Shown here piece after piece: positions 32,888 through 35,016 of a DNA stretch of 64,000 nt. The number at the start of each line of letters is the position of its first letter. Position 1 is the stretch's first letter. This DNA is from Macrostomum lignano (taxonomy: Eukaryota): NCBI GenBank assembly GCA_002269645.1, contig NIVC01001151.1, positions 266,204 through 330,203 of the forward strand. Direction: 5' to 3'. The position numbers and the translations under genes are program-made. The notes below the pieces were generated by a model that saw only the letters and a list, made by a program, of their open reading frames with translations, was not told the DNA's origin and did no database searches.

Positions 32888-35016
32888 ATGAGCCTGGCCC
32901 CGCCGTCTGTTATGTTCAGCCAGATCTTGGGCGTCCCTACTCGAAAACAGCCGGCATCGTCAGATGACTCATCCGCGGCCCGACTTCGTCGTCAGCGCTA
33001 CTTCCCAGGCCAGCAGACGCCGCAGTCGGCAAAGCGGCTGACCTTGCAGGCAGCCGCGTTGCCCTACGTTCCAAGTTCGATTCGCTGTCCAGCAGAGCTC
33101 AGCCCGATCGACTGCCACCTAGGCCAATCGGTTCCGTTCGCCGACATTCTTCAAAACGTTCGCAACCGGTGCCTGCCGACGGCTGAGCTGGGCCGGCGAT
33201 TCGAAGCTGACCAGGACGAATTCGAATGGCTGGATCAGGTGGGACCTGGTTTTCTGTCAGCCGGAGAGACAGACAGACAGACAGACAGACAGACAGACAG
33301 ACAGACAGACAGACAGACAGACAGACAGACAGACAGACAGACAGACAGACAGACAGACAGACAGACAGACAGACACTAAGACAGACAGACAGACAGACAG
33401 ACACTAAGACAGACAGACAGACAGACAGACAGACAGACAGACAGACAGACAGACAGACAGACAGACAGTCAAACTGACATTTCCCAACCCACAAACGCAG
33501 GTCAACAACAGCTCCGGTGAGTCGAGCTCCCGCAAGGTGGCCGCTAAAGAGTCGGCCAAGCGAGATATCGACAACTACTTTTTTATGTACTTTCGCATCC
33601 GCATGGAGAACTACGTGGCGCTGGTCACCGCGCTGAAGCAGAGCTCCAAGGATGAGAGCATCTTCAACGAAGAGAGCATCGACAAGTGGACGCACAAGTA
33701 CAAGTTCAAAATTAGGAGGGCTGCTCCGCTGAAGAAGGTGCAGGAAATTCATATATAAATCTTTTTTTCCCCACCCCACTCTACCCAAGCCTTACTCTGC
33801 CTAACCCTACTTTAGCCACCTATACAGTATTACTCTTTTAGTATTGCTCTTTCCGTCCCGTAAGGCTGGAGGTTAGGGCCAAGCAACTAGGCTGAACTGA
33901 TCCACGGATGGTCGTTGCCATGACTCCCTACGGTATTCTGACCTCACTGACCTTTTCCTGAAACTGGGGTTATCACGTGTGTCGCGCGTGTAGGATTTGG
34001 AGGGAATGGGCCACTAAAGGTAGGCAGCAGTAGCCTACACATGAGGTGGGTGTAGCCAAAACAGAGTCCCCCGTCATCGGCTATACATGTGTACCTCGTA
34101 GGTTACCTCGCCGATAATCATTTTGGGGCCCCAGCCTCGTTAGAGTGGAAAATGATGATGCACCCTGGCAGTCTCCGTGGTCAACTCAAACTAGGGATGC
34201 CAATTGCAAACAGCTGGAGTGTCAAGATCAAGAAGAAGTGGCAAGAAGCTGCACTCAACCCAAAAACCAAATACCCCAGCGGTTATACTTTACCCACTTT
34301 ACCCAATTCTACTCTACGTAACCCAACTAACCTCTAATCTACCCAATTCTACTCTACATAACACAACTAACCTCTAATCTACACAATCCTACTCTACATA
34401 ACCCAACTAACCTCTAATCTACCCAATTCTACTCTACATAACCCAACTAACCTCTAATCTACACAATCCTACTCTACATAACCCAACTAACCTCTAATCT
34501 ACACAATTCTACTCTACATAACACAATTCTAACCTCTAATCTACACAATCCTACTCTACTATATACCCAACGTAAAGCTACTAAACTCACCCCACAACAT
34601 CTCTACTCTGCCAAAACTTTACCCAAATCTACATGTACTCCTCCGCAAAGGTTCTGATGGCCTTCTCCAGCCGGATGGGTCTTGAAGGCGACCCAGACGT
34701 GATGTACTGCGCCGACGGATTTTACGGCGACTCATTCACCGGCCGGACGTATAACAAGAATGAGGTGCCGAACAACCGGATCCTGCCGGCCAACACCAGC
34801 CTGGCTACGGGCCTACGCAACGGTTCGAACATCTACGTCAGCCGAATCACCAACGCCGAGAAGAACAACGCGATCGCGCAACTGCAGATGGACCTGAGTC
34901 GCGGCAACGAACCGTCCGACGAGGAGGGCGACGAAGGTCAATCATCGTCTGCCAGTGGCACGCCCGGCCAGGCCGGCGCCAACAAGGACCACCAGCAGAG
35001 CGATGACGGAAAGTGA
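32888..35016 (+). CDS. Protein with one atypical SUMO-like (Rad60-SLD-type) domain and no C-terminal diglycine, 3 exons, 317 aa
   Basis: Exons 32888-33238, 33501-33737 and 34651-35016, all phase 0. The junction rebuilds YKFKIRRAAPLKK|VLMAFSSRMGL...DG...RILPANTSLATGLRNGSNIYV, which aligns to SUMO [22 protein letters not shown]...FDG...I...T...I.V. Exon 1 membership is less certain. Confidence 0.72.
33265..33467. repeat. (GACA)n microsatellite in intron 1 of the SUMO-like gene
   Basis: Direct inspection. Confidence 0.97.
34300..34560. repeat. 40-bp minisatellite (CTACACAATCCTACTCTACATAACCCAACTAACCTCTAAT)n
   Basis: About 6 units in intron 2. Confidence 0.9.

Follow-up and report, generated by a model that had tools for sequence, protein, structure and literature searches.

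A predicted SUMO-like domain with two insertions in a multi-copy protein family of Macrostomum lignano

Mlig015806.g1 is a three-exon gene on the forward strand of a 64,000-nucleotide stretch of the Macrostomum lignano genome (assembly GCA_002269645.1, contig NIVC01001151.1, positions 266,204 to 330,203). This whole stretch is called the window below, and coordinates are window positions unless another locus is named. The overall best explanation of the gene, to which we assign a probability of roughly 0.6, is that it encodes a non-conjugatable SUMO-like protein that would serve non-covalently as a SUMO mimic or adaptor. As modelled, the structural identity of its product as a SUMO-type beta-grasp domain with insertions is highly probable. 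Engagement of Ubc9 or of partners carrying SUMO-interacting motifs (SIMs) by this domain is a more tentative proposal, suggested by the alignments.

Fold and sequence similarity to SUMO

AlphaFold2 was run on an alignment of the protein family described below, and values of the predicted local distance difference test (pLDDT) are given as means of ten-residue blocks. For the Mlig015806.g1 product of 317 residues, pLDDT was 81-94 for the blocks over residues 141-280, and it was below 50 for nearly all residues before 135 and for all residues after 283. The predicted elements follow the order helix alphaN (128-140), beta1 (143-151), helices 155-165 and 174-180, beta2 (181-189), alpha1 (194-205), beta3 (213-216), a long ordered loop, beta5 (255-261), and a C-terminal helix, alphaC (264-281). 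AlphaFold2, Foldseek, and hhalign all point to a SUMO-like beta-grasp domain that extends from beta1 to beta5 (residues 143-261; positions 33576-34845, forward strand) and is split by intron 2. Together with two insertions and the flanking helices alphaN and alphaC, the beta-grasp is predicted to form a compact unit of about 140 residues.

In a Foldseek search of the PDB, SUMO2, Smt3, SUMO1, and plant SUMO were on top, with target-normalised template modelling (TM) scores up to 0.84-0.85 and a probability of 1.00. Nearly all of the 50 matches listed were SUMO chains or SUMO fusions; the exceptions were three entries with ubiquitin-like (UBL) domains of USP7, one tubulin-cofactor entry, and the second SUMO-like domain (SLD2) of NIP45 (3a4r, rank 42, TM 0.74). 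We observed the same predicted architecture, including a helix equivalent to alphaC, for the clade-B paralogue P0015, which is about 21% identical to the Mlig015806.g1 product over the full length (alignment A6). For P0015, all 50 matches listed were SUMO or SUMO fusions, with TM scores up to 0.90 and a root mean square deviation of about 1.8 A. A beta-grasp fold closest to SUMO is therefore confidently predicted by AlphaFold2 for Mlig015806.g1 and likewise for a distant paralogue, in line with the SUMO-like core that the initial annotation had read from the DNA letters.

The initial annotation had also pointed out that a SUMO-like core appears only when exons 2 and 3 are joined. This observation held: FKIRRAAPLKKVLMAF is identical to its SUMO2 counterpart at 8 of 16 positions, the R.GL, DG, and I.V patterns are all present, and the three structural and profile methods agree with it. 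When the Mlig015806.g1 product alone was compared with PDB sequences, the matches were weak (E-values of 0.02-2), but all 45 were SUMO or Smt3. For the profile searches we used a domain alignment, A3, built from the relatives found by phmmer. Among the 60 matches listed for the A3 profile against the PDB, 59 were SUMO/Smt3 chains or SUMO-tagged fusions; for example, a tandem SUMO2 chain was found with an E-value of 1.8e-5 and Drosophila SUMO with 2.6e-3, in two collinear segments with about 20 unmatched residues between them. The hhalign comparison of A3 with SUMO1, SUMO2, and Smt3 gave a probability of 92.7% and an E-value of 4e-7, and it matched residues 184-259 to SUMO2 30-86 with a single 18-residue insertion right after Asp-Gly. 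Of the SUMO sequences in this comparison, SUMO2 and Smt3 match the PDB alignments from beta2 to Asp-Gly, and SUMO2 does so from beta4 to beta5 as well. The control comparison of A3 with ubiquitin/NEDD8 gave 0.2%. On these comparisons, we take the domain to descend from, or to be nearest to, SUMO itself and not ubiquitin.

The stretch most like SUMO is the beta2-alpha1 segment (residues 181-207, THKYKFKIRRAAPLKKVLMAFSSRMGL; positions 33690-34683, forward strand, split by intron 2), which has a net charge of +8 and is the counterpart of the SIM groove. In the hhalign alignment its groove positions F186, K187, I188, K196, F201, and R204 correspond to F32, K33, I34, K42, Y47, and R50 of SUMO2. The family-invariant pair D218-G219 (34714-34719, forward strand) is aligned with D68-G69 of Smt3 and D63-G64 of SUMO2. 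Among the 12 positions that are invariant or nearly invariant in the family, five are also invariant among SUMO1, SUMO2, and Smt3 (R204/R50, G206/G52, F/Y215/F60, G219/G64, and T245/T72, with SUMO2 numbering second). Two further pairings, R149/K21 and T181/S28, fall beyond the part aligned by hhalign and are suggested by the strand pattern.

Insert 1 (residues 152-180; positions 33603-33689, forward strand) lies between beta1 and beta2, includes the helices 155-165 and 174-180, and ends in the invariant W180; its pLDDT was 89-94. Insert 2 (residues 220-237, FYGDSFTGRTYNKNEVPN; positions 34720-34773, forward strand) follows immediately after Asp-Gly, coincides with the 18-column gap of SUMO in the hhalign alignment, and contains the invariant F220, G222, and P236; its pLDDT was 92-94. 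Inserts of about 25 and about 19 residues had been estimated from the DNA, and the model and hhalign give a beta1-beta2 connection of 29 residues and 18 residues after Asp-Gly. The length of insert 1 stays within two residues in all family members, and both insertions are kept at near-constant length family-wide, with four invariant positions between them. As modelled, the insertions are ordered, conserved, family-defining elements rather than idiosyncratic loops, and insert 1 is helical.

Downstream of beta5, the predicted helix alphaC (positions 34852-34905, forward strand) stands in place of the Gly-Gly tail of SUMO. It is followed by an acidic, Ser-rich tail that is predicted to be disordered (residues 282-317; positions 34906-35013, forward strand) and has a net charge of -7. 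The earlier observation that diglycine is absent and that an acidic tail follows was correct; no Gly-Gly was found in any of the 317 residues. Because Gly-Gly is absent and beta5 runs on into a helix, we conclude from the sequence that the Mlig015806.g1 product cannot be conjugated to substrates. Acidic tails recur among the clade-A paralogues.

Gene structure, homeologs and paralogues

The whole coding sequence (CDS), from ATG to stop, occupies positions 32888-35016 of the forward strand. Exon 1 (32888-33238), with the ATG at 32888 and a GT donor at 33239, encodes residues 1-117, a predicted disordered N-terminal arm. Intron 1 (33239-33500, GT..AG) consists almost entirely of a (GACA)n microsatellite at 33267-33479. 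Exon 2 (33501-33737), bounded by the AG at 33499-33500 and the GT at 33738, encodes residues 118-196, which carry an NNS motif, alphaN, beta1, insert 1, beta2, and the first half of alpha1. Intron 2 (33738-34650, GT..AG, phase 0) contains a 40-bp minisatellite at 34300-34571 and interrupts alpha1 between K196 and V197. The remainder of alpha1, beta3, Asp-Gly, insert 2, the beta4/3-10 region, beta5, alphaC, and the acidic tail are encoded by exon 3 (34651-35016; residues 197-317 and the stop codon), which begins after the AG at 34649-34650 and ends with the TGA at 35014-35016.

The joined reading frame of 954 nt translates into 317 residues that are letter-for-letter identical to GenBank PAA71628.1 (record NIVC01001151.1), the 'hypothetical protein BOX15_Mlig015806g1' of M. 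lignano. The annotation of GCA_002269645.1 is a genome-guided RNA-seq transcriptome made with StringTie and TACO (PMC5730564); therefore, both splice junctions of Mlig015806.g1, including the 33737-34651 junction that the initial annotation had postulated, are transcript-derived and not ab initio. Independent support for the joining of exons 2 and 3 comes from the paralogue Mlig027033, in which the equivalent of beta2 to beta5 lies on one unbroken exon. It is also supported by a 1-kb Logan contig from run SRR30276812, a clade-B member whose open reading frame (ORF) is unbroken where its genomic relatives have introns.

An acceptor-like site, TTTTTTCAG, is present at 32836-32844, 44 nt 5' of the ATG, and is kept in the homeolog g2. 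Since trans-splicing is common in M. lignano, this site could be a spliced-leader trans-splice acceptor.

Two more copies of Mlig015806, g2 and g3, are located on other scaffolds, and both are in frame. At all three homeologous loci the neighbour is a gene for a 799-residue WD40/beta-propeller protein, which in the window starts at about 36444 (forward strand), some 1.4 kb downstream of the SUMO-like gene. The copies with their common WD40 neighbour are consistent with the duplicated genome of M. lignano. Both splice-site pairs of g1 are conserved in g2. Substitutions between the two copies amount to 5.8% in the introns, which also carry 278 bp of indels; 238 bp of the indels are in intron 2, whose splice sites are unchanged, and the length of intron 1 is polymorphic between homeologs. 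The CDS of g1 and g2 differ by 15 synonymous and 3 non-synonymous substitutions, that is, by a proportion of 0.069 per synonymous site (pS) and 0.004 per non-synonymous site (pN), with pN/pS equal to 0.06. Their synonymous divergence of 6.9% is near the intron divergence of 5.8%. The product of g3 differs from that of g1 at two residues, and residues 76-299 are identical across g1, g2, and g3. Because pN/pS is 0.06 between g1 and g2 and no copy differs within residues 76-299, we regard the reading frame of Mlig015806.g1, an expressed gene, as being under strong purifying selection.

A phmmer search, run exhaustively over 1.84 billion representative proteins, returned 13 relatives. All those with a checked source were from M. 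lignano, except for the one Logan contig (SRR30276812). Word-index homologue searches found few entries, all from M. lignano, and no second family member was found by tblastn in the 64-kb window. Clade A comprises Mlig015806, its unnamed close relative P0004, and Mlig027033, 029560, 010594, 006860, and 019084, while clade B comprises Mlig015520, Mlig022324, the P0026 type, and the Logan transcript P0012. Judging from these searches, the genes belong to an old multigene family that falls into two clades, counts at least ten paralogue groups, and was detected only in the M. lignano lineage. The number of copies per group in the neopolyploid genome ranges from 1 to 4 or more, and these copies are near-identical. 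Identity between subfamilies is 25-60%, so that the duplications which produced the family should be far older than the recent genome doubling.

Across 12 sequences from both clades, W180, T181, R204, G206, D218, G219, F220, G222, and P236 are invariant. The family signature was found throughout: insert 1 ends in W-T, R-x-G closes alpha1, D-G-F-x-G opens insert 2, a Pro closes it, and N-[NV]-S stands upstream. Intron positions differ between subfamilies, and the intron comparison is therefore uninformative on an origin from a SUMO gene.

In the exon 1 arm, the motifs RRQRYF, VPSSIRCP..LSP, and F112-x-W114-x-D116 (33221-33235) are common to the clade-A paralogues. The arm also has one SIM-like hydrophobic core, I13-L-G-V16, which is without an adjacent acidic flank and is not kept in the paralogues. 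The N-[NV]-S motif, in most cases with an Asp before it, is at residues 119-121 (33504-33512), about 20 residues before the domain, and it occurs in both clades within disordered, otherwise unalignable sequence. N-glycosylation at the NNS or N-x-T motifs was considered and rejected as unlikely, given that no signal peptide was seen by eye and that one member has FST.

At another locus, L008, a P0026-type gene (5768-8496, reverse strand) and Mlig022324g1 (10001-11795, forward strand) stand head to head, 1.5 kb apart, and share intron positions. This pair appears to be a local inverted duplication, and the other members examined are dispersed. The Logan contig, in its positions 1-1016, is a transcript-like clade-B member with the NNS motif upstream of the called start codon; because this conserved motif lies upstream, the true start of the ORF is probably further 5' than called.

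We rejected the names given in UniRef to family members (SPK, HELICc2, Nse4, TF-B3, UAS, decapping nuclease, Spt5-NGN, SH2, IBD, and Rad60-SLD), which contradict each other among near-identical sequences and are not reproduced by Pfam. Either the source or the collection appears to have mis-assigned them. A full-text literature search found no paper mentioning Mlig015806 or its family. What was known is thus a gene deposited as a hypothetical protein; what is new is the identity of the family, which no domain model covers.

The paralogue Mlig027033 gives a hint on expression. Its copy Mlig027033.g2 (RNA815_14701), whose product is 40-42% identical to that of Mlig015806.g1, has the positional RNA-seq class 'Testis' (PMC7336406, Tables S6 and S11). 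In the same source, it is reported as up-regulated in worms kept in octets compared both with isolated worms and with pairs, and its in situ hybridisation, which stains the testes, is attributed to Ramm et al. 2019 (PMC7336406). We consider the mapping of this entry to be right because the forward primer given there yields PGELNPV on translation, a stretch contained in the family member P0005.

The surroundings of Mlig015806.g1 are dense in micro- and minisatellites. Tandem Repeats Finder reported 58 rows with a score of at least 150 in the window, and some arrays have 50-200 copies; examples are the arrays at 2308-3349, 3958-5051, 8163-9139, 12163-13146, 18057-19196, 20002-21137, 47465-48582, and 54462-55161. 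Many long ORFs of the mechanically made ORF list are tandem repeats. Positions 16405-17733 of the reverse strand hold an intact single-exon ORF of 442 residues for a seven-transmembrane, rhodopsin-type G protein-coupled receptor (Pfam Srw 1e-14, 7tm_1 4e-8), and an ORF at 23501-24241, also on the reverse strand, contains an exon of an organic solute transporter of the Ostalpha/TMEM184 type (PF03619, E-value 1e-38). On the forward strand, a reverse-transcriptase fragment (51668-52384, RVT_1, E-value 1e-9) lies between the arrays 50939-51667 and 53632-54095 of one 30-bp repeat and is probably a retroelement remnant.

Proposed function and alternative explanations

The beta2 strand and helix alpha1 of SUMO form the groove that receives SIM strands. 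In the mechanism that we propose, SIM-type beta-strand ligands would bind in the basic beta2/alpha1 groove of the Mlig015806.g1 domain, and clients or partners would probably be recruited by the disordered arm through its short motifs VPxSIxCP, FxWxD, and N-[NV]-S. The acidic tail may bend back onto the basic groove and mask it. The likely setting would be the male germline, because the paralogue Mlig027033 is testis-specific. SUMO-like recognition is supported by the alternation of basic and aliphatic residues in beta2 and by R204, both kept family-wide, and by the five positions at which the family agrees with residues invariant among SUMO1, SUMO2, and Smt3. It is further supported by the alignment of D218 with Smt3 D68, a hot spot for binding to the Ubc9 backside: D68R is the standard mutation that abolishes this binding of SUMO (PMC7849368; PMC13645794). 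With the same surface, SLD2 of Esc2 acts as a cofactor of the E2 enzyme; a single SLD2 can bind the Ubc9 backside as well as a SIM, that of Esc2 a SIM of Nse2, and can stimulate sumoylation (PMC7849368; PMC13645794). A more far-reaching version of the proposal, which we consider unlikely in its full form, is an expanded flatworm family of SUMO mimics in the male germline that would act as cofactors, competitors, or decoys at the Ubc9 backside or at SIM readers such as SUMO-targeted ligases, with the insertions as a specificity surface private to each paralogue.

Several observations weigh against a SUMO mimic or adaptor. The Mlig015806.g1 product had no Pfam match at an E-value of 10 or less, including the ubiquitin and Rad60-SLD (PF11976) models, and ten paralogues had no ubiquitin-like or Rad60-SLD match at an E-value of 1 or less; the relationship to SUMO was detected only by the profile-profile and PDB-profile searches and not by curated Pfam models. 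The alignment under the AlphaFold2 models is shallow, with 12 sequences from essentially one species. In the model, insert 1 emerges from the beta1-beta2 turn and insert 2 from the Asp-Gly loop. Both places border the Ubc9-binding sheet face, which the insertions may cover together with alphaN and alphaC. Such a cover is also suggested by beta1 (YFFMYFRIR), which is hydrophobic on both faces. The SUMO2 groove positions H37 and T38 are Ala-Ala in the Mlig015806.g1 product, and clade B has lost the equivalents of F186 and K196.

Some of these observations favour the chief alternative explanation, which we consider less likely than not: the SUMO fold would be only a scaffold, and the two insertions, alphaN, alphaC, the residues W180, F220, G222, and P236, and the NNS and FxWxD motifs would form a new surface, used in a process particular to this lineage, probably in spermatogenesis, and unlinked to Ubc9 or SIMs. 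The divergence of clade B at the groove and a sheet face that may be covered are in line with it. So is the location of a third of the family-invariant positions in the insertions, at sites that have no SUMO equivalent, and the modelling of both insertions as ordered parts of the domain. Testis-specific expression of Mlig027033 would fit as well; reproduction-related genes are described as fast-evolving in Macrostomum (PMC7336406). On the other hand, paralogues that share only 25-60% identity all keep R204, the acid of the Asp-Gly pair, and a beta2 in which basic and aliphatic residues alternate. The upkeep of a fold would not be expected to demand as much, though several of these residues are also structural. 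We still prefer a non-covalent SUMO mimic or adaptor to a mere scaffold.

The remaining explanations are far less probable. A divergent orthologue of the Rad60/Esc2/NIP45 (RENi) proteins might be suspected from a non-conjugatable SUMO-like domain with the acidic residue that SLD2 of RENi proteins uses for Ubc9, from the presence of NIP45 SLD2 in the Foldseek list, and from the name 'Rad60-SLD domain-containing protein' of the UniRef cluster of P0015. However, a single beta-grasp is predicted, the family alignment shows only one conserved domain, residues 1-125 are predicted to be disordered, SUMO proper ranked above every SLD in sequence and fold searches, and the family is multi-copy and lineage-restricted, not one conserved orthologue; the Pfam Rad60-SLD model is matched neither by P0015 nor by any other member, and the UniRef names are unreliable. 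The phmmer search found no clear orthology to a described SLD protein. Since only one SLD is present and the relatives are only M. lignano paralogues, we judge a RENi orthologue very improbable. It is hardly credible that the product is a true conjugatable SUMO paralogue with a C-terminal extension that a protease cuts off, as might be thought from the SUMO-like fold, the extension after beta5, and the Gly-Gly pairs in the tail of P0005; the Mlig015806.g1 product has no such pair, its beta5 enters a confident helix and no flexible tail, and the pairs of P0005, which are not conserved, come more than 25 residues after beta5, within low-complexity tail sequence. Equally remote is an annotation artefact or a decaying pseudogene with a chance likeness to SUMO. 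The DNA is extremely rich in repeats, both introns are satellites, the single-sequence similarity to SUMO is weak, and Pfam matches are lacking, all of which could be expected of an artefact. Against it stand the low pN/pS, the intact frames in three copies, the RNA-seq-based model, the retention of the same domain across more than ten paralogue groups, and the likeness to SUMO in both profile and fold comparisons, alongside a ubiquitin control that was negative.

If the proposal of a SUMO mimic or adaptor is true, the SUMO fold would have been put to non-covalent use a second time, independently, in a single-domain, insertion-bearing, multi-copy, and lineage-restricted form; to our knowledge, built-in SUMO-like domains have so far been known mainly from the two-domain Rad60/Esc2/NIP45 proteins. 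The predicted domain gives a structural identity to about 20-30 'hypothetical protein' entries of M. lignano and defines a domain family that has no Pfam model. If the testis link holds family-wide, SUMO mimicry would be connected to fast-evolving reproductive genes. Naturally, lineage-specific elaboration of ubiquitin-like folds is not surprising in itself. Transgenesis, RNA interference, and in situ hybridisation are routine in M. lignano.

Comparison with known systems

SUMO1, SUMO2/3, and Smt3 are both the best structural and the best sequence match of the Mlig015806.g1 domain. They have in common with it the beta2-alpha1 signature 'FKI+R..PL.K....[FY]..R.G', an Asp-Gly that follows beta3, a Thr at the beginning of the 3-10 turn, and the I.V pattern in beta5, and about 30% of 57 aligned columns are identical. 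Conjugatable SUMO has its Gly-Gly shortly after beta5, exposed by SENP/Ulp processing, whereas the Mlig015806.g1 product has a helix and an acidic tail there. The SUMO domain is also compact, at about 75 residues: its beta1-beta2 hairpin is tight and its beta3-beta4 turn short, compared to the helical connection of 29 residues and the insertion of 18 residues found here. Its short N-terminal tail contrasts with a disordered arm of 125 residues. The Mlig015806.g1 domain is thus a SUMO-like domain inside a larger protein, not a modifier.

The RENi proteins resemble the Mlig015806.g1 product in having a non-conjugatable C-terminal SUMO-like domain behind a long, poorly ordered N-terminal part. 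The acidic residue equivalent to Smt3 D68 is kept in both, and SLD2, as an E2 cofactor that can also bind a SIM, is the best functional precedent. RENi proteins carry SIMs in their N-terminal region; in the arm of the Mlig015806.g1 product, the one SIM-like core is I13-L-G-V16. On the other hand, RENi proteins have two tandem SLDs, their SLDs are without the two insertions, and they are conserved across eukaryotes, whereas the present family has many paralogues found only in M. lignano; in the Foldseek list, NIP45 SLD2 stands below about 40 SUMO entries. Integral UBLs, such as those of USP7 and the tubulin cofactors, serve non-covalent recognition. They are similar in that a beta-grasp is embedded in a larger polypeptide, and they appear lower in the Foldseek list; the profile comparison with ubiquitin/NEDD8, on the other hand, was negative, and the similarity is specific to SUMO.

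A single-SLD protein that fits neither the SUMO class nor the Rad60/Esc2/NFATC2IP class had been suggested in the initial annotation, and this description agrees with the one predicted beta-grasp, the missing Gly-Gly, and relatives that are only M. lignano paralogues. We would class the Mlig015806.g1 product as a SUMO-like-domain protein with a new architecture that is restricted to its lineage, and as neither a SUMO modifier nor a member of the RENi proteins.

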